A DNA stretch of 64,000 nucleotides from Macrostomum lignano (Eukaryota), in assembly GCA_002269645.1 (NCBI GenBank), contig NIVC01002679.1, positions 1-64,000 of the forward strand. Direction: 5' to 3'. This document shows, one piece after another, positions 15,548 through 60,948 of the stretch; position 1 is the stretch's first letter, and each line of letters starts with the position of its first letter. The position numbers and the translations under genes were made by a program. Under the pieces are notes generated by a model. The model ran no database searches and was not told where the DNA came from. It saw nothing but the letters and a program-made list of their open reading frames with translations.

Positions 15548-16295
15548 GACTGTGAACTGTGTTTCAGGTAGTTGATATGTGTTTCAGGTGGCTGAACTGT
15601 GTTTCAGGTGGCTGAACTGTGTTTCAGGTAGTTGATATGTGTTTCAGGTGGCTGAACTGTGTTTCAGGTAGTTGATATGTGTTTCAGGTGGCTGAACTGT
15701 GTTTCAGGTGGCTGAACTGTGTTTCAGGTGGCTGAACTGTGTTTCAGGTGGCTGAACTGTGTTTCAGGTGGCTGAACTGTGTTTCAGGTGGCTTAACTGT
15801 GTTTCAGGTAGTTGATATGTGTTTCAGGTGGCTGAACTGTGTTTCAGGTAGTTGATATGTGTTTCAGGTGGCTGAACTGTGTTTCAGGTAGTTGATATGT
15901 GTTTCAGGTGGCTGAACTGTATTTCAGGTGGCTGAACTGTGTTTCAGGTGGCTGAACTGTGTTTCAGGTGGCTGAACTGTGTTTCAGGTGGCTGAACTGT
16001 GTTTCAGGTGGCTGAACTGTGTTTCAGGTGGCTGAACTGTGTTTCAGGTGGCTGAACTGTGTTTCAGGTGGCTTAACTGTGTTTCAGGTGGCTGAACTGT
16101 ATTTCAGGTGGCTGAACTGTGTTTCAGGTGGCTGAACTGTGTTTCAGGTGGCTTAACTGTGTTTCAGGTGGCTTAACTGTGTTTCAGGTGGCTGAACTGT
16201 GTTTCAGGTGGTTGAACTATGTTTCAGGTAGTTGACGCTGTGTTTCAGGTAGTTGAAACTGTATTTCAGATACTTGACGCTGTGTTTCAGGTAGT
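15548..16295. repeat. 20-bp minisatellite (TGTGTTTCAGGT(GGCTGAAC/AGTTGATA)), about 37 copies
   Basis: Direct reading; it fills most of MGAT1-like intron 1. Confidence 0.95.
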
Positions 16296-16372
16296 ATTTT
16301 CATTTTCAGAAGATTGATCAGGGTCATTGAGGCCCGTTCGAGTCCACATGCCAGGTGAATGCGCGCTATTAC

Positions 16373-16909
16373 CTGAAAGTAGCGAAAGAAATCGGCGGCA
16401 ATCAGCAGGTCGTCCTCCAGCACGATGACCCGATTGAACTGCCGATGGATCAGTACGTAATCCAGCGCATCCAGGTAGTGTCGGGTGATTCTCCTCACCC
16501 TGTTCTTATCGCTGCCAGTCAACCGCGCCAGACCCCGCTGCCACTCGATTTCGCCAGTCGCCGCCAGCGGCTCCAACGCCGCCGAAGTCATCGGGTCGTC
16601 CGAGTCTTGCGAGACGATGATTGGAAATTGGGCGGCGCTGGGCCGGTAGGCGGCCACCTGGCGGATGAGCAGCTGCACCTCTGGTCGGCTGGCTGCCATG
16701 ATCAGCACGGCCACGGGAGCTTCGTGTACGGGACTTGGCTGAGCAGACAACGATGCGATCGGGCTCAACCGGCTGAGCAGGCCAATCAGCAGCGGCAGCA
16801 GCCCGAGCAGCAGCAGGGTCAGCAGGCAAGCTGGCTGAAGCAAAGCGCGTCGAAGGCTTCGCACAGGAAGACAGCTGACAACTGCTGCTGCTACTGACAG
16901 CTGCGGCAT
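16373..16909 (-). CDS. MGAT1: GnT-I/MGAT1-like GT13 glycosyltransferase, exon 1 (type II membrane anchor)
   Basis: ATG at 16909, TM helix LLTLLLLGLLPLLIGLL, YRPSAAQFPIIVSQD, RHY and IVLEDDL (EDD metal motif), donor CAG|GTAAT. The spliced product is 438 aa. Confidence 0.85.
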
Positions 16910-18442
16910 CGCGTCGGAGAACAGAAAAGTCTGTGTTGTGGGAACACAAACATCTTGGAGTTTCATTAATACAAAAAGACCTGTATGCAAACAAAGACCA
17001 GGCCTGCATTCACCTGAAAACAAGGTTCAAGGTAAAGTCAGGAGCCTTAAAACCAGCATCTATCGTGCCGAGTATAACCTAGAACCCTAGCTTGCGTATC
17101 TAAAGGCCGTATTGAATACATTGGCGCTTATGGGAAAATCTGACCTTCTAGCAGAATCGTCGAATATCTCGACGATCCTGAGGGCTGGCGACTAGTTGAT
17201 TCTTGTTTGAGAAGATGCGCAACAAAATTTTATAGCCTGGTGTTCTTGAATTTCGTGTGCCTACGTCACTTCGTTCCGGCGCAGCAAATAAGTTCACCCT
17301 TGGTAGTTCTACCCTTATTGAGGCTTGAGACTTCGATCTGATTTGATCAAATGCAGTAAAATCTACGAAATTTAAGGCAAAACTTACGCGCTCCAATTTC
17401 GATTTCGACCAATTTCGACGTTCTCTAAAATCGAGCTTACTTAATTGAAGACGGCTTTGGACATAGTAAGGCGATTTTTTTTTAGCAAGTTAGCTACGCG
17501 AAAAGCACATATTCCACTTGTTGCTTTTAATCCCGGCATTAATTAAGGAGTCGGACTAAATTATTCTCAGAACCTACCCCCCCCCCGCTCCCGGTGGATC
17601 CGGTGCTTACATTTAAACACCTGTCTGATTGAACTTAATTTGCTGTTAATTGATTGGTCTGGCTGAAGGCATTGAGGAATAGAAAGAGCTTCATAAACAG
17701 ACTGACTGACTGCGATGCCGGGCCAGTTCAAGGTGAAATCCGTCTGCAGTACATTAAACGTGAAAAAAGTGAAGTACCTTGAGCGCGTACAATATTGTTT
17801 CTAATCCACTGCACAATGTTGTCCTTGTGTGGCATTTATGTCTAAGTCTAATCGATCCGTACAGAATAGATTTTGTTTTAACAGTAGAAAGACCACGGGG
17901 GTGTATTACAAATACACACGACCCATTTCACGATAGCTCACAAACCGAATTACCGATTTTCGTAAAAGTCAACCAAAAAGATCAAAATTTTCCGCCCTTT
18001 CCGACGAACTAACTTTCAAAGTAATCCCACGTTAGCATTGTCGAGATATTCAACGATTCTTGTCGAAGACATTGGTGGCAAGGACAACCAACACTACACT
18101 GTATAAACCTTTATGGTTAAACCATACATGTATGGCTCAATAATCTGGGTCCATCTGTCGTAGAGGACTTTGTTCTCAGCATCCCAGGCACCAGGGCCCC
18201 CTTCATCACCGTCTGGAGCATCGGCAGCGACCGTCGGGACCTTCAATAAAAGCACCCAATTGGCATCTCAGAGACGACGTTCCCAAAACTGAAATTCTCT
18301 GATTTCCTCTGAAATCCTCAGAAGAATCCTCTTCTGCATGCAGCATTCAGTCTGTAAACATAATCAGTGAATGAAATGGACGATGGCGACCCTCTAGGCT
18401 GACCTGTAGACATACTTTCGGGACCTCCAACGGAGTGCCACC

Positions 18443-18799: not shown

Positions 18800-18946
18800 G
18801 AACACCACGGCTGAACAGTTCATTCGCCTGGTCATTCGGAAGCTTCGGAGAACATGACTCAATGATTCGCTATAATTGGTTGAAGTATTGAAGTAGATGA
18901 CCTCACTGTAGCAAAGTCGCCTCTACCAAGGCGTATCATTTTTGAC

Positions 18947-19190
18947 ATGCTGTAATATCATTTTTGACATGCTGTAATATCATTTTTGACATGCTGTAAT
19001 ATCATTTTTGACATGCTGTAATATCATTTTTGACATGCTGTAATATCATTTTTGACATGCTGTAATATCATTTTTGACATATGCTGTAATATCATTTTTG
19101 ACATATGCTGTAATATCATTTTTGACATGCTGTAATATCATTTTTGACATGCTGTAATATCATTTTTGACATGCTGTAATATCGTTTTTG
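18947..19190. repeat. 22-bp minisatellite (ATCATTTTTGACATGCTGTAAT), about 11 copies
   Basis: Direct reading. Confidence 0.92.
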
Positions 19191-19465: not shown

Positions 19466-20578
19466 ATAACAAGGATATGATTGGGTAAAGTGCAACAACA
19501 CTAGCTCTAGCTAGCAGCCACTACCACAGTTAACACGCCCGACTCTCGCGCCACCACCTATGGTTCGCTTCCATGCGCGGCCGCATTCATTTAGGGGCTT
19601 GTGCGCAAAAATTGGCCAGGGGTAGTCGAGCGATTCACGCCTATGAGGGCCAATTTCAAGGCTGAAGAAGTACATTTGCAGAGCACACACTGAGACCCCT
19701 GCCGTCCAGATCGTGGATCCGCCGGCACTATAAGGCCCAGCAGCATCGGGCTCTAGCTGAAGGCTCCCTGGCGTTGCACCATTCTAGCCCAGCTGCTTAC
19801 GACCTACATGTACAGCTAGAAGTTGCTAAAGTGGCTGAACCAGCTAGGTCTCTATTCTTAGAATCTTGAAGTCGGGTGGAGCCTCCTAAACAAGTCGACA
19901 AACAACCGCAGTCGCGGCAGCGTACTAATAATCGTACTCCTAGCTGGGCAGCTGGAGGAACTGCCAAACTGGAACACACTGGATGGTGCTTGAACACAGT
20001 TCCGGTCTGAGCTCTCACCCTTTGTCACCGGACGCGAGAACGCCAACACGGATGGTATGGAGGACCTACTTGACCGGCTGGACTTTCACTGCCACAAATT
20101 AAGCGACTACCGAAATTCGATCACACGCTGGTCGGACTTAACGAGCGCAGCCGCGTCACTAACTGCGACACCACTGCACCACTGGGTTTCCGGTCAGACC
20201 ATGCACAGATTTCTGCTTTGCGAGTTGCTGAAAGCTGTGCTCTAATTTGTTCTGCAGGCTTGTATTGTCTGTATTTTATAAAACCTTTCAATTTGTTTCT
20301 TATCTATTGTCGATACTATGAATTTAGCGAAAGAAATAAACATAAAGCAGACAAATGACAGGCAAAAATAGATGTTGCTGCAACTGAATTCCATTCAAAT
20401 GCGACCAATCAAAATGGTCATCGCGCCTATAAATTTATTTTTAAAATTTAGCTAACATACGAGTAGAATTTACAGTCCTACTAATAGCAGTAGTATCGAG
20501 TGACACTTCATTGACCATCATACAATACTTTTACCTACAGATTTATAACTACTATATAGGCTATAAGTTATTAGTCTA

Positions 20579-21817
20579 CTATTTTCTAGGCGGTTTCCTT
20601 GGCCGTCTACCCTTGCCATAGTGAATCTTGGTATTGTCAGTTAGCGACACGATCTGCAGTCCGCCGCTTGACATGCCCTTCAGACAGGCCAGACGGAGCT
20701 GGTTCATGCCGCGGATCACCACCCGAGCGTGGCTGATGCCCAGCTTCTTAGCCTTCAGCGCGGTTGAAACGCCAACTACCTGGAAACAGAATTGTAATGA
20801 ATTCTTTGATGCTCGCAGAATTGAGTAGAAGTACTGAGATCGGCTACAGTAGTAGGGCCACCCCGGGATCGCCTGGCTCCGGCCGGTTCTTTTACTCCAC
20901 GGTTCCTTGCCCGTGGCCCCCACCCTCACCGCCGTTTCCACCACCCGGATCAACCAGTGGGTGGCTTCAAAGTCCTTCCTCCGCCATGCGCAGGGCCCTG
21001 CTTGGACTCAAACCGCAGGGAAATCATGGTGACCATGGCTGTTTAGTCAAGCATATCGAGAAAGAGGAGCACTTTATCTGGGAATGCCCCGCCTTTACTC
21101 AGGACAGGCTCACCTAGCTCGGCCCAAACCCGGACCTCTCCGACGTTTTCAGGCCCGAGAATCTCTGCCAGCTCATCCGCTACCTAAGGGCTACCGGACA
21201 AGCGACCATCCACCTCCTGGACTCTCGGGGGGGGGGACAGCGCTACGGACCGGATCTCGATGCGCGGCACCGCAGTACCAGCACTAGAAGCACTCATAAA
21301 ATGCAATAAACACTCAATATTTTTATACAAAATTCACCTGAGCAGCAACAGTCGTAGACTTCTTAGCATTATGAAAGCCTTCAATTCCCGTAGAGGTAAC
21401 AGCCAATGGGCGTCCCAAACAATCCGTGATTGTTACTATGCAATTATTGCGCCTGGCGCCAAAGTAAACAATTGGCAAAGTGTGATAGGGCACGCCAGCT
21501 GGAGTCTCCTCAGTCAGGTGGTACTCGTTCACGGGGACAATATCTCCCATTACATTGTAGGTTGGCTGGTTTAGTAGCATGTGGGTAGCCAGGGCTACAC
21601 CCTTTGGCGCTGCTGCCGATTCAGGTGTTAGAGCGGATGAACTGGATTCGTCTGAGGTCACACCGCTATCCGTGCTGCGGTCCCAATGAGTGGGATGGCT
21701 CGAACCTGCGCCGCCTCCTCCGGTGCCGCTGCTACTGAGCGATCTATTCAGCATAGAGCAGGCTGGATTGAGCAGACAGCGTCGGGCAAAGTCTGAGCAT
21801 AGTGTTCTCAAAAGCAT
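20579..21817 (-). CDS. MRPS11: Mitochondrial ribosomal protein S11 (uS11m); exons 21817-21338 and 20779-20579; 226 aa
   Basis: Arg/Ser-rich presequence, [26 protein letters not shown] | [30 protein letters not shown]. Phase-0 GT-AG intron. Confidence 0.93.
20855..21320 (+). mobile_element. Internally deleted 3' end of an R1/LOA/I-group LINE inside the MRPS11 intron (antisense)
   Basis: LPVAPTL..INQWVAS..QT then [33 protein letters not shown]...LIRYLRATG: the C-terminal zinc-knuckle region with its first Cys pair deleted, a stop codon and an AATAAA-containing tail. Confidence 0.55.
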
Positions 21818-22444: not shown

Positions 22445-22540
22445 TGCGCACAATTGCAGCAACGAGATCGGCCCAACACCCGCTCCGGTAATTTAACGGA
22501 GTTTAGGGCTTCGATAGAAGGGCGTCATATACGCAAGCCA
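22445..22540 (-). promoter_or_regulatory. Candidate SECIS element (type II-like, bulged helix II) for SELENOT
   Basis: Sense: ..TTGCGTAT ATGA C GCCC TTCTATCG AA GCCC T AAA CTCCG TTAAATTAC CGGAG C GGGT G TT GGGC CGAT.. It has the UGAC/CGAU quartet, unpaired AAA and an apical CTCCG/CGGAG stem, but an 8-nt 5' bulge. Folded by eye only. Confidence 0.5.
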
Positions 22541-22837
22541 ATAATAATTGAGGCATCGAGAATGCATTAATAACTGAAGGCGTAAGAATTATGACAAGGT
22601 CGAGGTAAGTTATTACTCGTGTTATTACACGCTAGTCGTAGTAGTGTAAGTTGTGCGATTCAAAAAATCAATTCGCCATAAGATACAAGTACATACAAGT
22701 TTAACGCATCGTATTAGGTTAAGAATTCGATTTTTTAAAGGTTAAAATACGTAGACAGGATGGAGTTACAGCAAGTTACAGCAAATCTAAATCTCCAGCC
22801 CGCCAAGCCTCTCTATAATTGTCTTGCTATAATGGGA

Positions 22838-23468
22838 CGCGGATTTTGAACCCGGGGAACTCCATTCCCCGGAATTATTTTTGCATGTATTCTAAAATCT
22901 GAGGTAAAACTCAAACAAAAACTTGTTCCCTTGTTAATAGTTAGGATAGAGTTAAACATAAAATAGTGTACATTCATGTAAAATTAGGACTTGAGGCAAA
23001 CATTGATATTGTTGGCTGGGGTGCTGCGCAGAATGTCAGGCAAACTCTGGCCTCTACGTACCTCTGCCTCTCCCTATGTCCTTTGCATCCTTTGAAACTT
23101 CCATCTTCTTTTCTGTTTCCTATCTTCTCTCTCCTCTCTTCTCTCGTCTCTTCCCTCTCCCCTCTATTCTTTTCTCTCTCTTCTCCTCTTTTCGCTCTGG
23201 TCTCTCATATTTCCTTTCTCCTGTTTTATCCTCTCTATACGGCCCTCGAGTTGTTTGAGACTTCACAATAGCAATCCGACCTGCTCAGAGTTTGTCTCTT
23301 CTCAGCTGCCTTTTCGAATCTCCTCTCTCCTATTTCATCTATTCCCTCGTCTCTCACGTCTCCTATCTCTCTTCTCTATTCCCTCTCCTCTCTCGCCCCT
23401 CCTCTAGCCCACAATCATACGCTAGGCTCTCTATCTAACCCTTGGGATAAAAAGTTTTGCGACCCCTG
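22838..23468 (+). mobile_element. Non-autonomous CT-rich element (copy 1) ending in a hAT-type TIR
   Basis: About 200-bp head (GGATTTTGAACCCGGGGAA..CTCAAACAAAAACTTG..) shared with 27410 and 30870, a CT-rich core, and a 3' end AAAAGTTTTGCGACCCCTG (reverse complement CAGGGGTCGCAAAAC, hAT-Charlie-like). Confidence 0.6.
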
Positions 23469-23775
23469 CTGTAAATAAAAATTGTCAGCCAATCAGATTC
23501 ATAGAGGTGTTTAAGGACGTTTCATCAGCTCAAAAAATTTCATACCATCGAAAACTCTCGCTAGTCAATACCGCTAGGACACAATCTAATACGAATTTGA
23601 TGATGTGAAAATTCGAGCTTTTAAATTTGGGACATGAGACAATTAATTTTAATCGGGACCAATAATAGCAAGTTAATTGAAAACTTGAAATAAAAATATA
23701 CGATGTACAATAAAATAAAACTGAATTAATACATTAGAAAGTAAAAATAATGCTTAAGCAAGCCAGTCTGGCACA

Positions 23776-23894
23776 CTAAAGCTGTGGCGGATCGGTCGCG
23801 GTGTTCACTGACATCATGTGGCTATCGATGATGCCCATCAGTTCACCGATGGACGGCACGCGGCCGTTCTGAAGCTTGGACCAAACGGACATGC
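23776..23894 (-). CDS. SELENOT: Selenoprotein T, exon 3
   Basis: Acceptor TTCTCTTCAAG; (G)MSVWSKLQNGRVPSIGELMGIIDSHM..L* matches SelT VPVWSKLESGHLPS; the phase fits exon 2. Confidence 0.9.
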
Positions 23895-24011
23895 CTTGAA
23901 GAGAACAGGGGAAGTGTAGAGTTCAGTTGGGATGAGGCGATTCCTATTCTGGCTTCTTAATACTGTCTGCATCAGGGTCCAAAAGTGAAATACTTCAGGC
24001 CTAAACGGGCA

Positions 24012-24285
24012 GCCGTAGCCCAGTGGTCTGGCGTGGTGCTCTCCTCTGGTGTGCCAGCGGCCCAGGCTCGATTCCAAGTGCAGTCACTTTAATTTGGGGC
24101 TGAATTGGAATCTTGGCTTGGCTCTGCTCGTGCAATTAACACCAACCCCCAAGGCACAGTAAAGTGTACATGTCTAACAGTCTAACGATAATTAAAGTTA
24201 GGGCCGCTGTACACTCCTGTGTGAGTGTGTGCCTGCTCAGGGGAGTCAAGTGCGCTGGAATGCACACAGCCCACTGCCTCTTAAC
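24012..24285 (+). mobile_element. tRNA-derived SINE in SELENOT intron 2 (antisense)
   Basis: Box-A-like TAGCCCAGTGG and box-B-like GGCTCGATTCC; near-identical to the copies at 59505 and 62206. Confidence 0.8.
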
Positions 24286-24392
24286 TAATTGGTTCTAACC
24301 TCGGTTCCTTCAGGCTTTGATGATTTTAATACTCTTCAGCTTCAGGTCTAGGCAAGTCTACCCCCCCCCCTGAGCCCCTTACCCTCACTCAC

Positions 24393-24718
24393 CGTTAAAT
24401 GTAACCTCGAATGCGCCAGTAGAGATGAGCTGGCCCTCAACAACATTGGAGATAAAGAACAGCATCATGCAGGCGTACATGCGGTTCTGACTGGCCCACT
24501 GATACATCTGCGGCGTTTGCAGGCCCAAATATGGAAACGGATCGACGCCCATGACTATGGCCATAATTAAACCGAGCTTAGTCCACGATAGTACGGTACA
24601 CAATAGTTGTCGCCATGCGGGTGGAGGATAATTATCCCCTTCTATCTGCAGAGCTGGATACTTCTGCGACAGAGCTTGGGAGAATTCCTCAAACACCCGG
24701 CGGTAGCCTCAGGAGTAA
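24393..24718 (-). CDS. SELENOT: Selenoprotein T, exon 2, containing the Sec UGA codon at 24711-24709
   Basis: AACAG|T TAC TCC TGA GGC TAC CGC CGG GTG TTT GAG = (C)YSUGYRRVFEE..YP..IEGDNY..YACMMLFFISNVVEGQLISTGAFEVTFN; donor G|GTGAG. Confidence 0.95.
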
Positions 24719-26678
24719 CTGTTAATGGGATGAATTCAGTGCTGGCATTAAAAGCATTTAGCATTGCTATAAAAAATATATTTATTACCTGTGACCACAG
24801 ACACTAGAGTAACTAGATGGGCCACTCAGCACATTTGCGTGCAAACTACTTTCAGTTCAGTAGTAAGCTAAACTGAAGCATTTTAATGCAGTTTACAAGA
24901 CAAGGCTCATTTATAACAGATTGAACTCTCCAGCCGCGCCTTTTCAGACTACCCCTGGCCCTGCATCAACCCAATTTTTATTGCCTTTCTTGGAATTCCA
25001 GCCTAAAGTTGCCTGTACATTTCAGTAGACTGGCTGATGTACATTATTGCTGAACCAATTAGCAAGTTGTTTACGCCTGCAAGCTTGAGCTTCTAAACTT
25101 ATCAAAGTAATTTCAGCTGCCTTTATTTTCATGAATAGCTTATGTATTCCTCATTGCTACTGAACTGACAGTAGAAAGCTGTTTCACTAAGTAAATATGC
25201 CTAAGTGGCCCATCTAGTCATTCTAGTATACTAAAATAACTAGATGGGCCACTCAGACATAATACTTAGCAAAACCAGCTATCTACTTTTGGTTCAGTAG
25301 CAATGAAGAATACATAAGCTTTTTTATAAGAGGCAGCTCTAACTACATAATTATAGGTATAGAAAAACTGTGTTCTTTAGATTTGCCCTAACATGGAAAG
25401 CTAAGTTAGCAGCTAGCAGTTGGGCATACTTGGAGTTAGACATAAAAATTGCATTATTTCAATAATATTTACCCATTGAATGATTGAATGTTTATGATTG
25501 CTATTTGTAATGATAATTAAGTCTATCTAGTTAGTGCACTAAAAACTTCTTGTGGTTTTTGCAAATTTCATTTCTCAAAAACAGCTTTGAAAAATAGCTA
25601 CACTTAAAAACTGTCAAAGAATCAATTTTTTAAGCTAAAAGATGATGCTAGCCCTTTTTATGTTCTCAAATTTGATTGCCAAATTTTAGATACAAATATA
25701 AACTAACTAAAATTCAAATCAAATCAGTTTCTTTTTTACTTTTTTATTATAAGTTTGGTACCTTGAACATAACTGCTACTTGGTGCATTTCCAAGGTATC
25801 TAGACAAAGTTATATAAGCAATAAAACCATTCATTTTTGTTTAAATGATTTAAGAACAGCAACAAATACCATTTTAACAATAAATACAATGGCTATTTAC
25901 TCATTATAGATGACTAAACAATGACCTAATTATAGCTAGCCTAACTAACTCATATGCAACATCATTATCAAGCTTAGGTGCAATGAATCAACTATTAGCA
26001 ATAACTTAGAAGCCCTTATTTTACTAAGAAGCTAATGAAATGAATCCCATAGCAATTGTGACATTGCATTGCAATAATCTCCTACCTTCTCTTTTCTTTA
26101 GCCCTACCATTGCCCTTGTCCTTTTTTAAGTTGCTCTAATTCAGCTTCTTCCCTAGCCCAATCCTAATATACATCATATATTGACCTATACAATCTAGGT
26201 GCTGGCTCAAGGTGGCTTAGCCACTGACAAAAGGAGTGGGGTGGCCTTAACAAAAGAGTCTCAAGTCAATCTGGCAAAAAGTGTAAATAAATAGTGTTCA
26301 AAAAGCGTAATGTCAATAAGCCATTGAGAATATATTCAAAAATGATTATAGTATAGCAAGGGAGAATCCATGATAGCCTAGCTAAGCAAGCAAGTTCAAG
26401 CCAATCATCAAGTCAATCAAGAAGCTCTTGATCTGATCATTTTAACAATAAAGTTTATGGGCAGACACCTTATAATGACTCAATGTTAAATTTTAAAAAA
26501 TTTCATTAATTGCTGAAGCTTCACTTAGAAGACAATAAATATTTGCACATATTCTTCTCAGATACCCAAAAGCATTATAAACTAATAGAGCAACCTTTGA
26601 TAGAAGCAAATAATATTTAAAGAAAAAAGTTTAGTCTTTTGACAACTTTGGTAACAGCAACAAGATCATCTTAGAAGA

Positions 26679-27056
26679 CATACATGCGCAACCTTGGGAA
26701 TCACCTGGCTGTTTCTATTGGCAACCTATACATGTAAGTCACTATTGGCTGAGAGCAGTCACGTGACTACTATTCCATCTAATAGCAACTTACATGATGT
26801 GCATGTTGCCAATAGAAACGGCTGAGTAAATCCTAAGGTTGCATCCAAGCAGTGGCACAACCAGGGGGTGGGGGGCAGGGGGCAGTCGCCCCCCCCCCTT
26901 AGGCGGGGGACCGAAAAAAAATCAAAGGGGGACCAAGCGAATTTTTGCCAAAATTCGGGCCACCCCTCCACTGCCCCCCACCCTCCCGGGACTTTACCCT
27001 CAGAATCCACCCCCCCCCTTGAAAAATTTCTGGTTGCGCTACTGTATCCAAGCATG
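26679..27056. mobile_element. Palindromic hAT-type MITE (CATACATGCGCAAC family)
   Basis: Long inverted arms (GCAACCTT.GG..GCTGTTTCTATTGGCAAC..CATGTAAGT and its reverse complement); flanks TTAGAAGA / TTAGAAAA (8-bp TSD, 1 mismatch). Confidence 0.65.
26850..27044. mobile_element. GC-rich MITE nested in the previous element
   Basis: 15-bp TIRs CAGTGGCACAACCAG / CTGGTTGCGCTACTG (2 mismatches); 8-bp TSD CATCCAAG / TATCCAAG. Confidence 0.8.
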
Positions 27057-27399
27057 TTAGAAAATAGAAATTGGCCTTAGGACAGCTTTTGATGGCATTA
27101 GTGGAAGTATTCTAGAAGACAGAAATAACCCCAACATTAATAGCAAAGAGCAACCTTCATTTTCCCAATTAGAGTCAACACATTACTCTTTATTTCCCTG
27201 TTATTATTGAAAAAATGTTACCATGAGCTAAAAATTGGTGAAAGAAAATTGATAGAGCCAATAATATTTTAAATACTTTTTGTCACTTGTCAGGTTTAAA
27301 AAAGATAAGCATTCTAGATAAAATTTTTATTGAGTGGGAGCTTGTTCCAGAAATAATTCTATCATATTTGCAGATTTGCAATAGACATTAGAATATACA

Positions 27400-29170
<1,771 letters not shown>

Positions 29171-30019
29171 TCCTTTTCACTCTCATCTGGCCCGTAGCCA
29201 TGAGCTGGATTCTTTATCTGGCCTTTGAGATAAAAATCTGCCGATCCCTGCTTCGAAAGCCAGTTTGTGGGACGTAGTACTATCATGGTTGTTATCATTT
29301 CCCATGCTTTAATCACGTCATCTTTCTGGTCAATTAGCAGCCCTGAGAGAAATTTGTATATCTCCAGCTCCACCACCAGTCTGCAGCAGTCTAACAACCA
29401 TGGAAATACGCATTTCTTAGGAGGCCATTTAAATTTTAAAGTACCTTATGCGAATCTTAATGTTAAAATTTTTATGGTGTAACTTATTTAGTAGGATTGC
29501 ATTGTAATAAGTTATTCATTAATTTTTCGATATTTCTATAAACCATCCCACATCGCCTTGATTTGCCATCCTTGTTTAACTGCTGCAGACTTGTCTATTC
29601 AGAGGAAAGGAAAGTGGTTTAAAATTGAATCTCTCGCTAAACTCTCTCCTCTCCACTCGCGGGGGTACAGAGAAGGCTATTAAAAAGTTATTCCAAAACA
29701 CTGTACACTCGCTATGTACATTGAGCCCTATCGCCTGACCCTTCGTCTGGCTCTGGGGAATGAGTGAGTGAGTGGCACAAACAACAGAAAAAGCAGACAA
29801 ACTTCACATGCTTACAGTTTCTGTTCTGATTGAGTTAGAGAGTTGAAACTTTACATTTAGACAGAGAATGAATCAAAGAAGAATTGTGTTAAGTTAGAAG
29901 TCAATCGCTTCACGTGGAGCAAACTTATGGCAACCGAAAGTTAGGCATTTTAAAACCCGATTCACACCCTTTGCCCAGATCGGGAAAGAGAGCAGGCGGG
30001 CGGAGGTTGGGGTGGCTGC

Positions 30020-30398
30020 CTCGCTGAAAAAAACAGCCTAACTTTAAAAGTGCACAGCGGCTTTCAGGATTAACTTTGAGATTTGAAATTTTACACGATT
30101 GTGTCAAAATAGTTGAAAATTGCCTGTGTCAAATTTGAAGAGAATCGGTAGAAGTGGAGCGGCGCTATGGAGGATTTAGTGAAAAAATCGCGCATTTTGA
30201 GCAGTTTTTTGTACTTTTAGGCAGGAAGACTTGAGTCTAGGAAATTTAAAGATAGCCTAAGACATTCTCCGTAGTGAGTTTAGGGTGGGTGTAAAATTTG
30301 GTGTTGGTTGAGTGGTTTGGGAGTCCATAGCGATCAAAATTGTCCACAGACACACAGACAGACAGACAGACAGAGTTTTGATTTTTATATGTATAGAT
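30020..30398 (+). mobile_element. 3' part of a Helitron/Helentron-type non-autonomous element
   Basis: AAATTTGAAGAGAATCGG..(CAGA)n..TTTTATATGTATAGAT terminus, typical of HINE/Lep1-like elements; related to 45040-45472. Confidence 0.4.
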
Positions 30399-30446
30399 AG
30401 GTTAATGCAACAACTGCTTATATTTTTTCTAACTTAGGCCTAAAAA

Positions 30447-32524
30447 CATACATGCGCAACTTCTGAAATTACGCTGGCCGTGCGACTTAGTTTTCGATAA
30501 AAAATGCGACTTACCTATGAAAGAGCCAAGCAAAAACTTTAGGTAAACGGCAGGAGTAACTATGGCCATATTTTTAAAGCTAAATGCCTCGCCAGCTAAT
30601 TAGTGCTGCGTGCAGATTCCGCGTTTGTATAACAGCTAATCAGTGTCATCTAGTGGCGGCATGAAGCAATTAGTAAATTGTCAGTACAGTGTAGTAAGCA
30701 TACTACAAAAGTCATGATTCATGAATGTCCAGAAGTAAGTGAAGTGAATACAGTGTGACCTATAGCTCAAGAACGATTTGCTAGACGATTTGGCATGGAA
30801 GATGAGAGCCCTGATTCAGATGGCTCATCAGATGCAGAATACGAATCCAGTAGAGATACAAGCTGTGAAAACCCACAGATTTTTAAACCACTGAATTCTA
30901 ATTCCCGGAACTATTTTTGCATAGATTCTAAATTTGAAGTCATGCTCAAACAAAAACTTGTTAACAGTTAGGAAAAAGGCAAAGATGGGAGTAATGCATG
31001 TTAAACTAAGATTTGAGCCTTTGCAAATTCTCTCCATTCCTCACTCTTCTCATCCTCTTATTCTTTTCTCTCTCATCCCTTATCCCTTCTCTCTTTCCTC
31101 TCCTCTCCTATCTCTTCTGTCTCCTCTCTACATTCTTATCTCTCCTCTCGTCTCTCTCCATTCCACTCTACTCTCTCATCTTATCTTCCCTCTCGTCTCT
31201 CTCCACTCTACTCTTTCATCTTATCTCTCCTCTCTTTTCTACTCTCTCATCTCTCCTCTCTTCACTCTCCTGTCATCTCCTCTTTATCCTCTCTTCTCTC
31301 ATCTACTCTCTCCTCTTTCCTCTCTTCTGATCTCATCCATCATCTTTTCTTTCCTCTTTCCTCTAATCTCCTCTTCTCTCTCATCTCTTTTTCCTCCCTC
31401 AGCTTTTCTCTCCTCTTCTATCTTTTCTCCCATCGCATCGCTCGCCTCTCTGTTTGCTTATCTCTAATCTTCTATTCCCTCTACTTTGAAGTAAGAAAAT
31501 ATGCACATATTTTTGCTGAAGATAAGAGGAGAGAAGAGGGCATTGAGGAGAAAGGGTAGAGAGAAAGGGGGAGAAGAGAGGAGAGTAAAAATTAGAGGAG
31601 AGAGAAGAGGGAAAAGGGGGGAGAGAGAGAAGAGGGGAGGCAAGGTAGAGAAGAAGAGAGAGATGAGAGTTGAAGAGACACCAACCTTGCTAGTTAGGAA
31701 GTTTCAAAGAACCCGAGGGGCGAGGGCCAGATAGAGGGGCTTCGCGAGCCGGAGTTTGCCAACCCCTGCTCCAGAGTTTAAGAAATCAATGGGAAACTGT
31801 TGACGCGGGCTTCTGATTTCAAAGATCTTGTCTGTGGTTGAAGGCTTCTATTCTGTTTTTGCTCTCCTGCCACACTTGCACCTACTACCCCCTGATTGCC
31901 TCTGATTGTGACTTACTTCCCTCTTATAGCGACTTAGTTGCTTCTTTTTGCGACTTACCTAATCCTTTTTGCGACTTACCTAATCCTTTTTGCAACTTAC
32001 CTAATCCTTTTTGCGACTTACCTAATCCTTTTGCGACTTAACTAATCCTTTTTGCGACTTACTTAATCCTTTTTGCAACTTACTTAATCCTTTTGCAACT
32101 TAGCTGATCCTTTTGTGACTTACCTGATTCTTTTTGCGACTTACCTAATCCTTTTTGCGACTTACCTAATCCTTTTGCGACTTACCAAATCCTTTTGCGA
32201 CTTAGCTGATCCTTTTGCAACTTACCTAATCCTTTTTGCGACTTACCTAACCCTTTTGCAACTTACCTGATTCCTGTTGCGACTTACCTGATCCTTTTTG
32301 CGACTTACCTGATTATTTTTACAACTTAGTTTGCTTCTTTTGCGAATTGTTTTTCTTTTGCTTCACCATTTTCCCTGAACTGCTCTTTCTTTTGCTTTCC
32401 TCTTGCCTTTCTTGGTTCTTGTGTTTTTCTGTTTTTGGTTGATTCAATTTTGCAACTTACCCCTGGTCAGCCACGATTTACGGTGGCCGGATCGGCCAGG
32501 TCGGCCAGCAGTTGCGCATGTATG
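30447..32524. mobile_element. 2.08-kb composite non-autonomous hAT element
   Basis: Perfect 15-bp TIRs CATACATGCGCAACT (30447-30461) and AGTTGCGCATGTATG (32510-32524); perfect 8-bp TSD CCTAAAAA (30439-30446 and 32525-32532). It carries a CT-rich element, an inverted GA-rich hAT end and a minisatellite. Confidence 0.9.
31925..32330. repeat. Approx. 20-bp minisatellite (TTTTTGCGACTTACCTAATCC) inside the hAT element
   Basis: About 20 units, direct reading. Confidence 0.9.
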
Positions 32525-32631
32525 CCTAAAAATATTTTTTTATAAGAGGCAGGGGGTTGTGTGCACCCTAGCACACTTTAAGAGACAAAGGCACACAACC
32601 GGCAAGAGGCATTACTGCCCATTCCGCCAAC

Positions 32632-32906
32632 TCCCTTGAGCAAGCATACAAGCACGTGGATATGTACGCAGTCATATGCACAGGCATATACTCACATAGG
32701 AGTGTTCAGCTGCCCTAACTTTATTTTATCATTAGGCATATACACTTCACTGCACCTTGGGAGATTGGCTCTCAAGGCCATAAATTGCACAAGCAGAGCC
32801 AAGCCAAGATTCCAATTCAGCCCCAAATTAATGTGACTGCACTTGGAATCGAGCCTGGGTTGCTAGCACACCAGAGCAGCTGCGCTAGGCCTACCGCTAG
32901 GCTATG
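32632..32906 (-). mobile_element. tRNA-derived SINE, moderately decayed
   Basis: Reverse complement of the 24012/59505 family. Confidence 0.75.
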
Positions 32907-33234
32907 GCCCCCCCCTTAGGCCTACTTAGCAAAGTTTGAATTTTTTACAAACCAAAAAGCCTCAAGTAGTTTGACTTAAAACTTGATAAGTTGCATACTT
33001 GTCTAGCCCTTAATCATAGCAAATTAGAATTTTATTATATATTTAAAAAACTATTTAGGCCTAACAATAACAAATTTTAAAAGAAAGGTAGGAATTATTA
33101 CTTTTTAAGTCAAGACCCAAAGCAAGTTTAAAACTTAAAAACCTTTAGAATTAAATATATTTAAAAAAAATTGCAATTGATTTATTTGAAAAAATTGCTC
33201 TTAACAACAATGTGCTAAGGGCTAAACGCAATGT

Positions 33235-33475
33235 GCCTAATCATTTGACAGTGAACCACCAGCTGCACTTTGTGGACCCTAACCACCCAGAAGTCCACAC
33301 GAACATAGTGGAGGGCACATGGGCCCACGCTAAGGCCCATTTCAGGGCCATGCATGGCATATCCAAGGCCCTGTTCGACACCCACTTGGACAAATTTCTC
33401 TCGTGTCGCTGCTACCCGCGCAACACCTTTGGGAATATCCTTTTCTGGGTGGCGCATTATTATTCCATCTGAGGC
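33235..33475 (+). mobile_element. Merlin/ISXO2-type transposase C-terminal fragment
   Basis: HLTVNHQLHFVDPNHPEVHTNIVEGTWAHAK..FDTHLDKF matches the IS1595/Merlin TVNH..FVDP..VHTNTIEG.W..K..YL.EF motif. Confidence 0.75.
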
Positions 33476-33600
33476 ATAAAACATAAAACAAAACTGTTGT
33501 TAACTGTCATTTTAAAAACAGATTGCCCAAAAAATAATTATGGCAAAATAATAATTAAACCAAAGACAATTGACTATAGTTATAGACTAGGCCTACTTAC

Positions 33601-33779
33601 CAATAAAGAACCTTTAATGTTGGAATTGAAAGCTTAGGCTTTGGCAATGATTTTTCCTCGGGCATCATTGACTTTTCATGAGTATTTGTTTCAACATTTA
33701 AAGGAATGGATATATCCTTAAAAAGAAGCAAAACAGCTAAAAGAATGGAAGGCAATAAAAGCCTTACACTTTCAGACAT
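33601..33779 (-). CDS. SELENOT: Selenoprotein T, exon 1 (signal peptide and first Cys of CxxU)
   Basis: MSESVRLLLPSILLAVLLLFKDI..PTLKVLY-TG|GTAAGT. Phase 2 joins the T at 24718 to give TGT (Cys). The spliced product is 207 aa, and intron 1 is 8.9 kb. Confidence 0.85.
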
Positions 33780-35481: not shown

Positions 35482-37789
35482 CTACAGATTCATTTTTAAT
35501 TTATCTAGAATTTTTTGCACGCATTTAATGGCAAATATATAGTTTATCACGGGAATAAGCTTAAACAGAATCCATTGAAGCCATAACTTACCAGCTTCCA
35601 TATGCGAATATGCTGTTCGAAGCAGCCTTTGCCTCTTGCCGGGCTTTCTTCCAGCGCGTGAAAGATCCTTAGCCAGCTTCTTCATTCGAATATTTATAAA
35701 AAGCATAGCCATTACTTGAATCAAATGCAGCTTGTGAGACTCAATGCTGATACTCGCGGATGCCCAATGAGAGTCCAGTTCAGGGAACAGATCGATTGAC
35801 ATGCGCAGAATCTCCTGAACAGCTACATCACTAGAGAATCCGCTGCTGTAGCTGGCACGCCGATCAACAGTCTCTGCATTGAGCAGCACCTGCAGGACAT
35901 TGCTGCTAGGAAAAATCAGGCCGCCAGTTCCTTCTTTGTTCAAAACATTTTTTATGGCAACGAGTGAGCATGGTCCGCGTGAAGCTCCTGGCGTCTCAGA
36001 GCTTGCAATCAGAGCTGACCTGCACGGAGCACATTCAACTGCTTTCATCATTCTTCGGACGACTGCGCCTGCGATATAGCACACGATGGACTGGCAAATT
36101 TCACACACCGATGCATTCTTGCAGTGTTGGATTGAACCCAGACTCAGTCCCATTTCATTTTGAGCTTTCATCTGCTTCCATGGCTGCTGTCCTGATGATG
36201 ATGGCAGACAAGACAATGATAACTGAATAGTGGCATCCTGCTGCCTCACATTCGGACTCACGGACTGTAGAATTCCACCTCCGGCATGCACCAACAGCTG
36301 CCTGAATGCTGAGCGAAATTGCGTGGGCATTGGGTTATGGTTCCAGCCATTTCGTAGCCTTACTGCATTAAAAAACAGTTCAAGAAAATCCTGCGAAAGC
36401 TTGTAAGTGCAAAGAAAGAAGAATTCGCCAGTCGAAAATAAATACTTAGCGAGCTCCATAATGCCATGGCAGTTGGTTATGAAGCCTAGGAAGCCAGTCT
36501 TCTTTGCGGTTTCTACTATCTTACAGCCAGCTGGAGTTTCAAGGCTACGGAGAAGTTCGATCGAGCTAGAGAAGAAATCGATCCAATCCGACTGATTGTC
36601 AGCTCTAAGCGCCATTTTGGCGCCATAACTGACCAGCTGCTTGGAATTGAAAGCGTCGAACAAATCATTCATGTGCTCAACGAAATCTGCGGTGACTAGC
36701 ACATCAGAGTGCTCAAATCCGATCACACCTTGCTGATGCACCCATCGCAAAGAGTCAGCCACTGACTTGCTAAACAGTTGTGATGCCAAATAGACCTTCA
36801 TCTTTAAATTAGCAAAGTTGATGTGATGCCTGCTTAACTTGTTTCCAAGTCGGAGTCCATGACTTTCTTGTACTTGCTGCAACATGGAAACATATTTCCA
36901 TTCAATATTTCCTCTGTTCGGCCAAACAAATCTTCCCAGTGACTGCCACTGATTGCGAATCAGCTTTAACATGTGAGGCACATCCAGGAAGGCTGCAACC
37001 TGAATGCTAGGATCGCAGGGGTGCGGGAAGCAGGCGACGACCTCGTTCGGAGAACTTATCCTGGAGCCAAGGAGTTCGATCGCTCGAATGTTGTGCTGAG
37101 TTCCATCGCATGTGAATGATGTTGCTATGACGCCAACCTGGTACAGTCGCTGAATGGATTCCTCTACAACACTCGAAAGAAATTCGCCGTCAATTCCATT
37201 CACTAGAAAATACCCTAAAGGCAGCTTCCAATAGCTCTTAAGCCCCACTGCCATCACTACCAGTGCCGAAGACGCCTCCTGATCACTTGGTTTGCCATCA
37301 CCTTTGTCAACGTAGCCAAAAAATATACCTTCGCTTGAATTCCATTCAATCATCAACTCTAGCGACATTTCATCAGCAACAATGTTGCAGTAGTCAAAGG
37401 CTTGGCCGTCAGTGGAGCTGCGTCGCCGCGAAAGTTCCTGGAAAGCCTGATCGCAAAACCCTGGAAAGCACTTTGCATTTGAGAGCCATTTTCTAAGTGA
37501 CGCAGGATGTGGAAGCTGAAAGTACTTTCGTACATACTCATAAGCCTTCGGACTATAGAAATGCAATGTAGAGGCGAATTTGCGCACTTCGTCAGAGAAC
37601 CTCTTTGTCCTTTTTCTATTGCAAGGCACGATGCTGCTCAGCAGTGAATCGGAGGTCAAGAAATTCAATCGAGATGCCGCTGCTTCGTTTAACATGCACT
37701 TGGCCTTTAGATCCAGAATTGCGTCCTTCAATGTTTTGGCTCTATGTTTAATTTGCCTGTGCTTTGAGCGCAGAGATCGAATTCTTCTT
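35482..37789 (-). mobile_element. P-element/THAP9-type transposase, uninterrupted ORF of about 770 aa
   Basis: FASTLHFYSPKAYEYVR, ADEM (D), TCDG (D), FLDVPHMLKLIRN, MKVYLASQLFSKSVA, YKLSQDFLELFF (E). Probable acceptor TTTGCAG at 37790 and possible donor at about 35590. THAP exon and TIRs not found. Confidence 0.9.
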
Positions 37790-39994
37790 CTGCAAACATC
37801 CCAAATCAAGAAAAAACTCTGAAATGTGTATTTTTTAAATAATTTCTATCAAAAATGCTAATTTTCTTGAGTATCTATCGAGTAGATTGTCTAAACTTTA
37901 TCTCATTTTTTAGATGAGAATGTCTTCTTTGAAATGATATGTCACTTTTATAGACTCTTGAAATATATTCCCCATAAGACAGTAAAAACAAAAGTCACTT
38001 GCATGTTTGGTTTTGAAGATCCCTTGTTCGGTTGATGAGATCTTACCCTATTGGCTTCTTGTCCTACCCAGAACCAAAGATAGTTATGCAATTATTACCT
38101 TTAATTAATAGGATAATAAGATGAAATTAAATCCACAATAATAGATAGAGAAAAGCCTAATTTTATCTACTATAACAATATTATAGTTTGAAACACTATT
38201 TATAAATATACCCTAGAAAAAATAACACATTTTTTGTATATACCAATATATGCCATTGCTATATAGTATAATAATATTATATAATATATAATATCTTATG
38301 CAAAAGCTCTAAACCAATAAAAATTAGTGACAGAACAAGGCCCAAAGGCTAGCTAGAATCAATCAATATATGTATAAGTTTATCAATCAGTAATAATGTA
38401 AAAATCATTAATAATTTTTGTTTATAATATACTTTTATTTTATGTTAACAGTTGTAGACCAACCATTATAAAAAAGTGCAATTTCAAGGGATTTTGCCTA
38501 TCAACAACTTTATTGACATTGTACAATATTAAGCCATCTGTCTTTGACAAAAGAATTCTAATATGGCTAGACTCCCTATGGCAGATCTCTAGCAAAATAG
38601 ATAGATTGGGGTGGCTTTGTCTAGGAACTTTTTGCATAAATCATTATTAACTAGTAGCAAAATATATTAAATCTTTGTTTATAGCTCCAATATGCTATTT
38701 TTCAGTCACCCTGCTATTGCTAAGAGCGCATGGTTGAATAGAACAATCATCTCTAAAAGAAATATAAGTATAAATTTTTTTATATGCATTTAAAATTCTA
38801 GCTACTTTGGTATCTTAGAAATTGCAAATTGGAAAATAAAATTCAAATGGCATTAAATTTTTATTATAGAAAAAATAAAAGTCTTTTATTATAAGGGCCA
38901 TTAGATTCATTTCTTGCTTCTTGCTTGCATTTTACCCAATTGACTAGTAGTAGCTTTTGCAAATACTGATAGGCTTCATTATCAGTCTATTAAGTTGCAC
39001 TGGCACCATTAGACTGTATCAACTCAATTAGCCAACCTTTAAGCAAAGGTACACCTTTGAACTGGCCACCAAGTTCAATGTCATTAACACAATGATCATA
39101 CTATGGGTAATCTTTGCAAAAACCCTTGGACCACATGTGAAAAACCTTAGCAACTTCTTCCTAGAAGGTGACCACCTTCCAGTGTAGTTACTGGGTGTCC
39201 TATATAAGAGACAAGAGTCATCAATACTTGCACTGGTGCCAGAAGATTGAGAAGGCATAGGAGATTGAAAACAAAATTGCTTCTAAATGTCTAGCACCGT
39301 AACTGCTCATAAATCTTGCCCTAAGGATTTTCAGCTTGAAAGGCTACATGGAATGCACTATAGGATTCTGCAATTATATCCCATTGGTTCATTGCTGAGA
39401 TAAGAAACTGCTAGGCTATAAAGGTTGTGATGACTTGCACATTTGACTCCAATACAACCTAAATGAATATCCAGAGTTGTATCTATCAGGAATATCAAAT
39501 GTCTCATACCCAATAAAAACATCTTAGCAGTATAATAGTAGATATTAAAAGCATAACATGAGAAATTGGAGGGGGAATTAGTTGCTACTTACTAGTGAGT
39601 TAACTATATCACTCTAAAAGTAAAACCATTTTCTGCCTTACTTGCACTGTTTTTATCACAAGTAAAACAGAAATTTGGTGGCAAACTGATAGATAGAAAA
39701 GGTTGGCATAGTTTTAGTACAATATTATAAATTATATTAATGTTAATATAGATAGCAATAACTCAAACTGAATATGTACCATTTTTATTGAGCTAGAATA
39801 CTTAGCATTAAAACCCAACCATGACAGATATTACTAACATTAGCACTATACTAGCAATCTTCGCCCCCCGTTGGGGGACATCTGGATAGAATCTCTGTTC
39901 TCTACAAGTAACAAAAAGACAGCCAAATAAAGCCTTCACAAAGACGACAGACAAACTGCTCAAATAAAGTGTAATGCAAGAAGAAATCATCCCA

Positions 39995-48402: not shown

Positions 48403-49965
48403 ATGACTGGCAGAGTGTGCAACTATGCAGCAGTGTTCCAGCTAACAGTGACGCTGTGCGCTCTGCTCACATTTAGCACATATCAGCTTTCTAACTACTA
48501 TTCTACTGTGCCGAAATTGCTCACAATTGGCAGTTCATTATTGAATTTGTCAAATTTTGACACGCCTATTAGTTCTAATAATGTATCTCTGATCAATGAA
48601 GTCAATGGCCTGATGCCTTTGTCAGGTTATCTTGGCAGAAATAACAGCAGTCCGGATCCTACCAGCTGTCCTAGATCTGATAGTCAAGCCTCGAATCGTC
48701 TTTGCGTTCCACTGACTCTGGCCGATTTGAATTCCACCTGTCCGAAGCCCGTAGACTTTGGTAGGTTGCGCTGCGGCTTCTGGCTGGCACCGCCCGCCTG
48801 CGGTGCTGCAACCGCCTGCGTAGCAGTTATTGTGCCTTACCGTAATCGACTAGTGAATCTGCTGCTGTTAGTCCAACACTTGCACAATCTGCTTCAACGA
48901 CAGGCTATTAATCATGGCATCTTCGTAGTTGAACAGAATGATCAGCTGCCATTTAATCGGGCCAAGTTGCTTAATATTGGATTCAAATTGTCGCAAAAGT
49001 GAGTTCTAGTAGTACCTGAAAAGTTTGTATGTATGTTTGCGTCTAGAACCTGGCTTCCACCCTGTCCAACACCTGATTTGATCAGCCTGTCCCGTGCTAT
49101 GTTTGATCTGACTCTGTCACATCTGGTTAGACCAGGCCCTGTCCCAACCTGGTTTCCACTTTTTTACCACATCCAACTTTCCAAACTTAGCTTTCACCAC
49201 CACATCTAGCTTCCCCCCTTTCCCCACACTTGACTCCAACGTTTTTCCATACTTACGTTCCATATTTGCCCACACCTGAGTTCTACATTTCCCCACACCT
49301 GAGTTCTACATTTCCCCACACCTGAGTTCTACATTTTCTCACACCTGATGTCTCGCATTATCCAATCTTCTCTGTAGCTCGTAATCGCCCCTGCTGGTAT
49401 AAATTTACTGTTACCTTAGTGAGAGACTGAGAGTAACAAAACTGGCGCTAACCCCTCTCCCCCGCCTTCCTACCCATTCAGCTACCATTCGTGTGACTGT
49501 TTCGTCTTTCACGACGCCGACAAGCTGCCTGAGTCTCTGCTAGTCGACTACTCCTGTAGCCAAGGCAGGCCGCGCCACCTCATTGGCCGCCTGTTGAATT
49601 TGGCCAGCAGGAAATACTCACCGGGCAAGATGTATCACAATTTTTTCGGCGGCGTCGTAGCTGTAACTAAGCGGCAATTCGAATCGGTGAATGGCAATTC
49701 GAATCTCTACTACGGCTGGGGTCGGGAGGACGACGAACTGTCGGTCAGGTTGCGGATCAAGCATTGGCGAGTCGCCTATTCGGACCAAAGTGCCAAGTAT
49801 GTGAATTTGAAGCACGCCGACGATATTAAGGTGAATAGTATGCCTTGGCCGTCTGTTAGCGCTGTTAGACGGCGAATGACTTCGGATGGGCTTAATTCGT
49901 TAAAGTACAACCTGACTGGCGTTTATTGTCATCCGTTGTTTACCATATTTAGCGTGCAGGTGTGA
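48403..49965 (+). CDS. GT7 beta-1,4-galactosyltransferase-like protein; exons 48403-48998 and 49482-49965; 359 aa
   Basis: N-terminal TM; VAVIVPYRNR, IFVVEQ, FNRAKLLNIGF | CFVFHDAD, FFGGV, NG.SN.YYGWGREDDE, DGLNSLKY. Phase-2 GT-AG intron. Confidence 0.9.
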
Positions 49966-59867: not shown

Positions 59868-60211
59868 GCATGGCGCTCTGCCTCTGCCTTCTGTCGCTGA
59901 GATCGTCTCGACCATCCAACGCAAAACTGGTACTGTGGCCTCGGATTGACCAGAAATCCTGTTTCAAAGCCATCATCACTGCAGGATTTACACCTGTACC
60001 GATTGAGCCCCTGCTAGACGGCGATCAGCTGGTCACAGATGTGACCGCTGTGCGATCTTTAATAGAGCAGCATGGGCCGGACAGTATTGTAGCCGTGATG
60101 ACCACTACTAGCTGCTTTGCGCCCAGAGTGCCGGATCGTCTAGCTGATGTGGCCAAATTGTGCGACGAGTTCGGCTTGCCGCATATTGTCAATAATGCTT
60201 ACGGAGTTCAG
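59868..60211 (+). CDS. SEPSECS: SEPSECS exon 2
   Basis: (G)MALCLCLL..WPRIDQKSCFK..TTSCFAPRVPD..PHIVNNAYGVQ|GT. Confidence 0.96.
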
Positions 60212-60296
60212 GTAGCGTTGTCATTAGCGATATTTATGTACCATGAAATCTTAATTCTACTACGAGGCAGGTTTCTGTGGGAAACTTCGTATTTAG

Positions 60297-60850: not shown

Positions 60851-60948
60851 TAATATCAGTTGCCTCCTCTTGCCAACAAATCAATGCAATGTATCCGACC
60901 CCGGCCTACCGATATGTATAGAAAGTAAACAATGGCGCCGCTCCGCAG

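Follow-up and report, generated by a model that had tools for sequence, protein, structure and literature searches.

A probable selenocysteine-type selenoprotein T gene in Macrostomum lignano, with a non-canonical candidate for its SECIS element

The stretch of DNA considered here (the window) comprises positions 1-64000 of contig NIVC01002679.1 of the flatworm Macrostomum lignano (assembly GCA_002269645.1), and carries on its minus strand a gene of the selenoprotein T family (SelT, or SELENOT). Judged from its sequence, this is very likely a real SelT gene of the selenocysteine (Sec) type, mis-annotated in the public record because its TGA codon reads as a stop. That it is a functional SELENOT-family copy (Rdx; thioredoxin-like fold), with the TGA decoded as Sec, is highly probable. 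The only point of some wider interest is that the species has two anciently diverged SelT paralogues, both without a canonical Sec insertion sequence (SECIS) element, and that the candidate elements found for them are similarly bulged.

The gene model was obtained by reading the minus strand at the coordinates of three proposed exons and splicing these by script:

33601-33779, minus strand: exon 1 (coding part), with the ATG at 33779; encodes MSESVRLLLPSILLAVLLLF... through ...PTLKVLY-C; last bases TG, followed by the donor GTAAGT
24719-33600, minus strand: intron 1; 8,882 nt, phase 2, splitting a Cys codon as TG/T; acceptor AG at 24720-24719
24393-24718, minus strand: exon 2, starting T/TAC TCC TGA GGC TAC CGC CGG (Y-S-U-G-Y-R-R-V-F-E-E-F) and followed by the donor GTGAGT
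24709-24711, minus strand: TGA, predicted Sec codon (residue 63) of the CYSU redox motif, 7 nt into exon 2
23895-24392, minus strand: intron 2; 498 nt, GT-AG, acceptor AG at 23896-23895
23776-23894, minus strand: exon 3 (coding part), with a TAG stop at 23778-23776; its C-terminus aligns with homologues

The three GT-AG exons join in frame. Their combined length of 624 nt (179 + 326 + 119) encodes 207 aa plus the stop; codon 63 is the sole internal TGA, and two codons before the ATG there is an in-frame TAA. Joining exons 1 and 2 gives TGT TAC TCC TGA, or C-Y-S-U, in the context ...PTLKVLYCYS-U-GYRRVFEEF... A preliminary description of this DNA had proposed the same in-phase three-exon structure, with its 207-aa product, VLY-C-Y-S-U-GYRR motif, split Cys codon, TGA 7 nt into exon 2 and 8,882-nt intron, and all of its coordinates were confirmed.

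The product belongs to the SelT family on several grounds. It matches the Pfam Rdx family (PF10262) over residues 55-192 with E 5.3e-17 and 62 bits (cut-off 22.6); exon 2 encodes the core of this domain, and the PTLKVLYC of exon 1 aligns with SelT homologues. The top entries in protein searches are M. lignano sequences deposited as “hypothetical protein BOX15_Mlig...” under the UniRef name “Selenoprotein T,” and the best named matches are SelT. In an alignment with 12 SelT homologues (A1), 40 of 41 invariant columns are retained, the sole change being K to R, and the SelT-specific residues GYRRVFEE, NKxYACMM, EGQLISTGAFE, and VWSKL are present together with the hydrophobic insert. The SelT assignment and CxxU motif of the preliminary description therefore stand; the signal peptide it also named is seen as a hydrophobic N-terminal stretch in the translation (LLLPSILLAVLLLF, residues 7-20), which is signal-peptide-like; the second paralogue has MQVLRVLFIFLAVACVNA.

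As proposed here, an mRNA spliced from the three coding exons would be translated from the start at 33779, beginning with the signal-peptide-like N-terminus, and the Cys codon of the C-Y-S-U redox motif would be completed across the 8.9-kb phase-2 intron. The TGA would then be decoded as Sec, with translation running on through the GYRRVFEEF...EGQLISTGAFEV domain to the TAG. Sec insertion would be directed by a SECIS in the 3′ untranslated region (UTR), most likely the element at 22538-22458, in which an AUGA...GA kink-turn core is combined with an AAA loop and a mini-stem.

Evidence that the TGA is translated through comes chiefly from the other M. lignano copies. The window gene has two near-identical counterparts, at loci L010 (~98% identity) and L003 (~96-97%); a second paralogue, here called B (65% protein identity to the window gene), is also present in two copies (L001 and L002). 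All five loci share the TGA and the phase-2 intron within the Cys codon, and none has a frameshift or an extra stop. With the TGA found in five independent loci, a sequencing error is excluded, and the codon is, as first described, a real TGA rather than a misread TGC or TGT. Exon 1 is identical at 179 of 179 positions across the three near-identical copies, while the surrounding 1.5 kb are ~91% identical. Variable columns among these copies amount to 3 of 326 in exon 2 (0.9%) and 0 of 119 in exon 3 (0%); the corresponding figure for intron 2 is 6.2%, and for the 3′ region 2.4-5.4%. Between the window gene and paralogue B, the synonymous divergence (dS) is 1.36, and the ratio of nonsynonymous to synonymous divergence (dN/dS) is 0.40 before the TGA and 0.20 after it; purifying selection has acted on both sides of the codon. 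This conservation, and the selection past the TGA, imply that the downstream sequence has long been translated in frame and joined to exon 1.

One alternative is that the TGA is simply a stop, in a decaying or non-functional gene that has lost its SECIS and whose mRNA either gives only a 62-aa peptide or is degraded by nonsense-mediated decay. The absence of a canonical SECIS at all five loci would fit this, as would the early ATTAAA poly(A) hexamer and the existence of several redundant genomic copies. Such decay is hard to reconcile with strong purifying selection past the TGA across an old paralogue split, with recent copies whose exons are 0-0.9% variable while their non-coding sequence is 2.4-6.2% variable, or with five copies free of frameshifts and extra stops and the retention of 40 of 41 invariant residues; we consider it very improbable.

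The public annotations imply a different product, in which only the part after the TGA would be made, from an internal start. GenBank PAA55977/PAA59300 (“partial,” 144 aa) is an exact translation from the codon after the TGA, and L003 is annotated as PAA58730, with 123 aa from an ATG after the TGA. The latter start codon is, however, ATA (Ile) in the window (variable column 24643), and past the TGA no in-frame ATG occurs until well within the domain (...LIMAIVMG...). The strongest conservation is found directly after the TGA (GYRRVFEEF, with 36 nt identical between paralogues), and exon 1, with the predicted signal peptide and the Cys, is perfectly conserved. A 144-aa model labeled “partial” that begins at the codon after a TGA is, moreover, a typical artefact of pipelines that treat TGA as a stop. 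An internal start is the least probable of the alternatives considered here. Sec decoding of a full-length SelT remains the preferred reading, and the expectation that open reading frame (ORF) callers would truncate the gene is borne out by the 144-aa model. A search of the literature gave no publication that deals with these genes or with the selenoproteome of M. lignano.

Correcting the annotation is where the practical value lies. The five SelT loci are deposited truncated or as “partial,” lacking both the predicted signal peptide and the CxxU motif of the catalytic site, and such models would mislead the design of RNA interference experiments, proteomics databases, and selenoproteome counts in this regeneration model.

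The 36 nt at the start of exon 2 deserve separate mention (24718-24683, minus strand, vs. L001:9979-10014). They include the TGA and the ten codons after it, and are identical between paralogues, despite only 73% identity over exon 2 as a whole. RNA-level constraint, splicing signals, or gene conversion may be the cause. No consensus structure for a Sec-redefinition stem-loop after the UGA was found among 47 SelT sequences.

A eukaryotic selenoprotein mRNA requires a SECIS in its 3′ UTR, and if the selection past the TGA is taken at face value, some working SECIS must exist for this gene. Space for it is limited: the gene for mitochondrial ribosomal protein S11 (MRPS11; coding sequence 21817-20579, same strand) follows SelT and leaves 1,958 nt of 3′ intergenic region. 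Features of this region are:

22458-22538, minus strand: best SECIS candidate, non-canonical; top match in the 2-kb 3′ region to the SelT SECIS covariance model described below (9.3 bits, E 0.51)
22818-23229, no strand assigned: ~413-bp indel in the SelT 3′ region, with the direct repeat TATAGAGAGG at its bounds; found in the window and in L010, but not in L003
21978-22281, no strand assigned: 33-nt tandem repeat, 9.2 copies, found by Tandem Repeats Finder (TRF); lies between the SECIS candidate and the next gene

The left part of the indel continues a GA-rich low-complexity sequence that is seen inverted in intron 1.

The tools used to search for a SECIS were calibrated on SelT sequences from other organisms. 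The set fetched comprised five Logan/ENA contigs together with 80 SelT loci from metagenomes or metatranscriptomes; 45 distinct ones cover the redox motif. Applied to five control transcripts, a structural scanner gave a single clean SECIS in every one (5/5), at 60-170 nt past the stop, and it found a SECIS in most of the metagenomic SelT loci. A covariance model (R1) was built from 42 SelT SECIS elements, with compensatory changes in helix II at all eight (8/8) RNAalifold pairs. It scores real elements at 16.5-44.7 bits (55 real SelT SECIS matches), and recovered about nine outside its training set. The Rfam model SECIS_1 performed poorly, finding one of eight canonical SelT SECIS controls.

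In the window's 3′ region, the only match of the structural scans is the candidate at 22538-22458, which can be written UAU-AUGA-C-GCCC-[UUCUAUC]-GAAGCCC-U-AAA-CUCCG-(loop)-CGGAG-C-GGGUGUU-GGGC-C-GA-U. It has the AUGA...GA quartet (AUGA at 22528-22525, GA at 22469-22468), flanked by a C-C mismatch where the consensus has c-u, and an unpaired AAA (22504-22502) followed by a 5-bp mini-stem. Its helix II has 12 layers on the 3′ strand, but 7-10 extra unpaired nt on the 5′ strand; because of these, the distance from AUGA to AAA is 20 nt, vs. 10-14 nt in the 42 aligned elements, while the 3′-strand spacing (12 nt) is normal. Compared with type 2 SECIS elements (RF00031 and R1), it is alike in its UAUGACG 5′ core and CCGAU 3′ core, the pyrimidine-pyrimidine mismatch beside the quartet, the unpaired AAA and mini-stem, and the 12 helix II layers on the 3′ strand; it differs in the 20-nt AUGA-AAA gap, a weak helix I, and a score of 9.3 rather than 16.5-44.7 bits. 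It is thus the best SECIS candidate for this gene and its most likely SECIS, although outside the canonical class; given the unusual 5′-strand bulge, it would have to be a derived form, if it works at all.

Several observations weigh against Sec decoding directed by this element. Both the splice model and the Sec reading are predictions from genomic sequence. No canonical SECIS was found in the window's 1,958-nt 3′ intergenic region, either by R1 with filters off or by the structural scans, and a canonical SECIS is absent at all five SelT loci. Rfam likewise found no SECIS in the window, the 3′ region, or the paralogue loci, a null that is weak evidence of absence since seven of eight canonical controls were missed. 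The 9.3 bits of the candidate come from its two ends alone, where the lowest-scoring real SelT SECIS has 16.5, and it folds no better than shuffled sequence (z -1.2). The window's 3′ region has a single poly(A) hexamer, ATTAAA at 23653, which is 123 nt past the stop and well upstream of the candidate. The R1 listing does not include the corresponding candidate of paralogue B (below), the best listed match in the paralogue's 3′ region having 4.8 bits; and the relaxed structural scan that picks up both was run under criteria set after the candidates had been seen. The earlier description of the gene as encoding a “true selenoprotein” is accordingly supported only in part: the CxxU motif and TGA are conserved and selection extends past the TGA, but in place of the canonical SECIS there is only a non-canonical candidate.

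Alternatively, the gene may be a real Sec-type SelT with its SECIS elsewhere than 22538-22458, either in a 3′ UTR exon outside the stretch analyzed or as a structure that the scans cannot recognize. The score of the candidate, below that of every real SelT SECIS (at least 16.5 bits), its 5′-strand bulge without counterpart in the 42 aligned elements, and its fold z-score all favor this. On the other hand, R1 run with filters off over all 64 kb gave no better match on the gene strand beyond the stop, no convincing partner for helix II emerged when distances of up to 700 nt were scanned, little room is left before the start of MRPS11 at 21817, and a structurally parallel candidate is present in the 3′ region of paralogue B. 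A SECIS outside the candidate element therefore seems rather unlikely, although it has to be taken more seriously than either a functional stop or an internal start, and the candidate at 22538-22458 is preferred.

Comparison among loci bears on the candidate in two ways. It has no variable columns (0/81) among the three near-identical copies, vs. 2.4-5.4% in its flanks; since divergence among them is low, this is only suggestive. The paralogue B candidate (L001:11430-11485; L002:8880-8935) begins AUGACG, has a 2-nt bulge and a fold z-score of -3.1, and is cleaner than that of the window; poly(A) signals follow directly after it (ATTAAA at 11620 and AATAAA at 11710). The two candidates have in common the AUGACG core, a similar GCCnAAACUCnG top, and a 12-layer helix II. 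BLASTN finds no alignable block between the 3′ regions of the window gene and paralogue B. The relaxed structural scan, over 289 kb of strand, gave 11 matches, five of which are distributed one per SelT locus, on the right strand and in the 3′ region. Its background is about one match per 45 kb of strand, giving p ~0.04 per gene group.

It seems possible, if only tentatively, that both M. lignano SelT paralogues use a derived SECIS with extra unpaired nt on the helix II 5′ strand (2-3 in B, 7-10 here), while retaining the 12-layer 3′-strand spacing, the AUGACG/GA core, and the top formed by AAA and mini-stem. If so, this would be a lineage-specific relaxation of the quartet-to-AAR spacing rule, and would explain why selenoprotein genes in this genome escape standard SECIS models. 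A functional candidate would bear on how strictly SBP2 and the ribosome require this spacing, and would mean that SECIS-first selenoprotein finders under-call the M. lignano genome.

Other SECIS-like matches were set aside. In the proximal 3′ UTR, the ATGA sites at 23543, 23525, and 23502 cannot form helix II, and the first of these is unconserved in L003, where ATGAAA becomes ATTAAT; weak matches there to C/D-box small nucleolar RNAs (snoR22, plus strand, and snoZ122, minus strand; E 0.9-3.8) were treated as chance. The strict pattern-and-helix scan and the scan based on minimum free energy gave, downstream of the gene, only tandem-repeat artefacts at 19005-18923. The best R1 match in the window (37862-37796, minus strand; 18.1 bits, E 0.18) is AT-rich with a UUGA...UGAU core, and is probably due to chance; it cannot in any case serve the SelT mRNA, since it precedes the SelT start and sits where the P-element transposase ORF has its 5′ end. 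R1 matches in paralogue B (L001:205-287 and L002:5075-5153, plus strand; 15.6 bits) are intronic, with UA in place of the 3′ GA.

Three side observations concern such structures. A tandem array with a ~22-nt unit (TACAGCATGTCAAAAATGATAT; 18923-19185, minus strand) is a source of spurious AUGA...GA hairpins in SECIS-type scans. The intronic match in paralogue B starts 9 nt past the exon 1 donor (UUGAUGGCU...AGCCUUAUG), and has no equivalent in the window. A compact GUGA...GA hairpin with AA in its apical loop (20121-20159, minus strand; also at L003:15182-15220), ~420 nt after the MRPS11 stop codon, passes the relaxed scan and was counted as background.

Outside M. lignano, the motif C-x-S-TGA-G-Y is found in 45 of 45 SelT transcripts fetched from other organisms; a W at the Sec position in database proteins is an artefact of gene callers reading TGA as Trp. 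SelT is one of five selenoprotein families common to all flatworms examined (PMC3828610), and has the Sec form in all three of these, Schmidtea, Schistosoma, and Taenia (PMC3828610). A Sec form in Macrostomum is thus the expected, ancestral state for flatworms; its evolutionary significance is small, and it adds little scientifically. The suggestion that it informs selenoproteome evolution in this lineage was therefore overstated. As to the accompanying statement that many invertebrates have a Cys version, Cys forms among the named protein matches here come only from insects and a mite.

In its protein, the M. lignano gene resembles vertebrate and other metazoan SELENOT in belonging to the Rdx family and in having a hydrophobic leader, a C-x-x-U motif followed by GYRRVFEEY/F, the hydrophobic insert, the EGQLISTGAFEV segment, and VWSKL; identity to proteins from invertebrate SelT transcripts is 41-57%. 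It departs from other organisms in its 3′ region: 42 SelT mRNAs have a compact canonical SECIS (AUGA, 10-14 nt, AAA, final GA), which in five transcripts that were inspected lies ~60-170 nt past the stop, while here nothing of that form is present within 2 kb. It shares the Sec form with the SelT of Schmidtea mediterranea, of Schistosoma japonicum, and of Taenia solium (PMC3828610; sequences not compared directly), but there is one SelT per species in the flatworms covered by that study, whereas M. lignano has two diverged paralogues, each in two or three near-identical copies. The insect and mite Cys homologues (e.g., the Drosophila CG3887-like “thioredoxin reductase-like selenoprotein T homolog”) are alike in domain and length, with 43-56% identity, but have CYSCGY, with TGT or TGC (Cys) at the position of the TGA, and need no SECIS.

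Intron 1 was first described as filled with transposable elements. It is long and rich in repeats, but most of this is CT-rich low-complexity sequence:

27395-29173, no strand assigned: degenerate CT-rich (GA-rich on the gene strand) low-complexity array (self-BLAST, TRF)
30856-31485, no strand assigned: second, related CT-rich array in intron 1
31944-32328, no strand assigned: 21-nt tandem repeat, 18.7 copies (TRF)
33212-33472, plus strand: weak fragment of an IS1595/ISXO2-like DDE transposase (Pfam PF12762, E 0.0038, 17.7 bits, under the cut-off of 27)

By self-BLAST and TRF, ~39% of the intron has a match to other window sequence, almost entirely within the CT-rich arrays and the 21-nt tandem repeat. 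The sub-threshold IS1595-like fragment is its only trace of a transposable element protein; it contains no intact transposable element ORF, and long “SLSLSL” ORFs in the CT-rich arrays are compositional artefacts. Its length varies from copy to copy (8,882 nt in the window, 6,803 nt in L003, and 5,924 nt in L010), as does that of intron 1 in paralogue B (~9.8 kb in L001, estimated from BLAST coordinates, and 2,268 nt in L002). The intron is accurately described as repeat-rich and unstable; “filled” with transposable elements overstates the case.

Other features of the window are:

59870-61563, plus strand: SepSecS (O-phosphoseryl-tRNA(Sec) selenium transferase), ~26 kb from the SelT start
35482-37809, minus strand: P-element/THAP9-like transposase, an uninterrupted 775-aa ORF with helix-turn-helix, N- and C-terminal RNase H, GTP-binding insertion, and THAP9_C matches (E down to 4.5e-37)
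20579-21817, minus strand: MRPS11 (Pfam Ribosomal_S11), with at least one intron, 2 kb downstream of SelT
55355-56305, minus strand: mariner/Tc1-like DDE transposase ORF (Transposase_1, E 7e-18)
48403-49002, plus strand: exon of a beta-1,4-galactosyltransferase-like gene (Glyco_transf_7N, E 5.6e-22)
16217-17023, minus strand: exon of a GNT-I family glycosyltransferase (E 4.2e-22)

The enzyme SepSecS produces Sec-tRNA(Sec). Two exon ORFs of its gene match Pfam PF05889: 59870-60328 covers profile positions 86-198 (E 4.8e-42), and 60961-61563 covers positions 202-381 (E 1.1e-32), including the QSCDKN motif. Its presence on the same contig indicates that the organism has at least this one component of the Sec machinery, which is what one would expect of a flatworm. 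The two intact-looking transposase ORFs are both outside the SelT gene, the P-element/THAP9-like one 1.7 kb upstream of its start. The gene order SelT then S11 is found in L003 and L010 as well; the genes that come after paralogue B are, by contrast, Cwf_Cwc_15 and one for an AP endonuclease.

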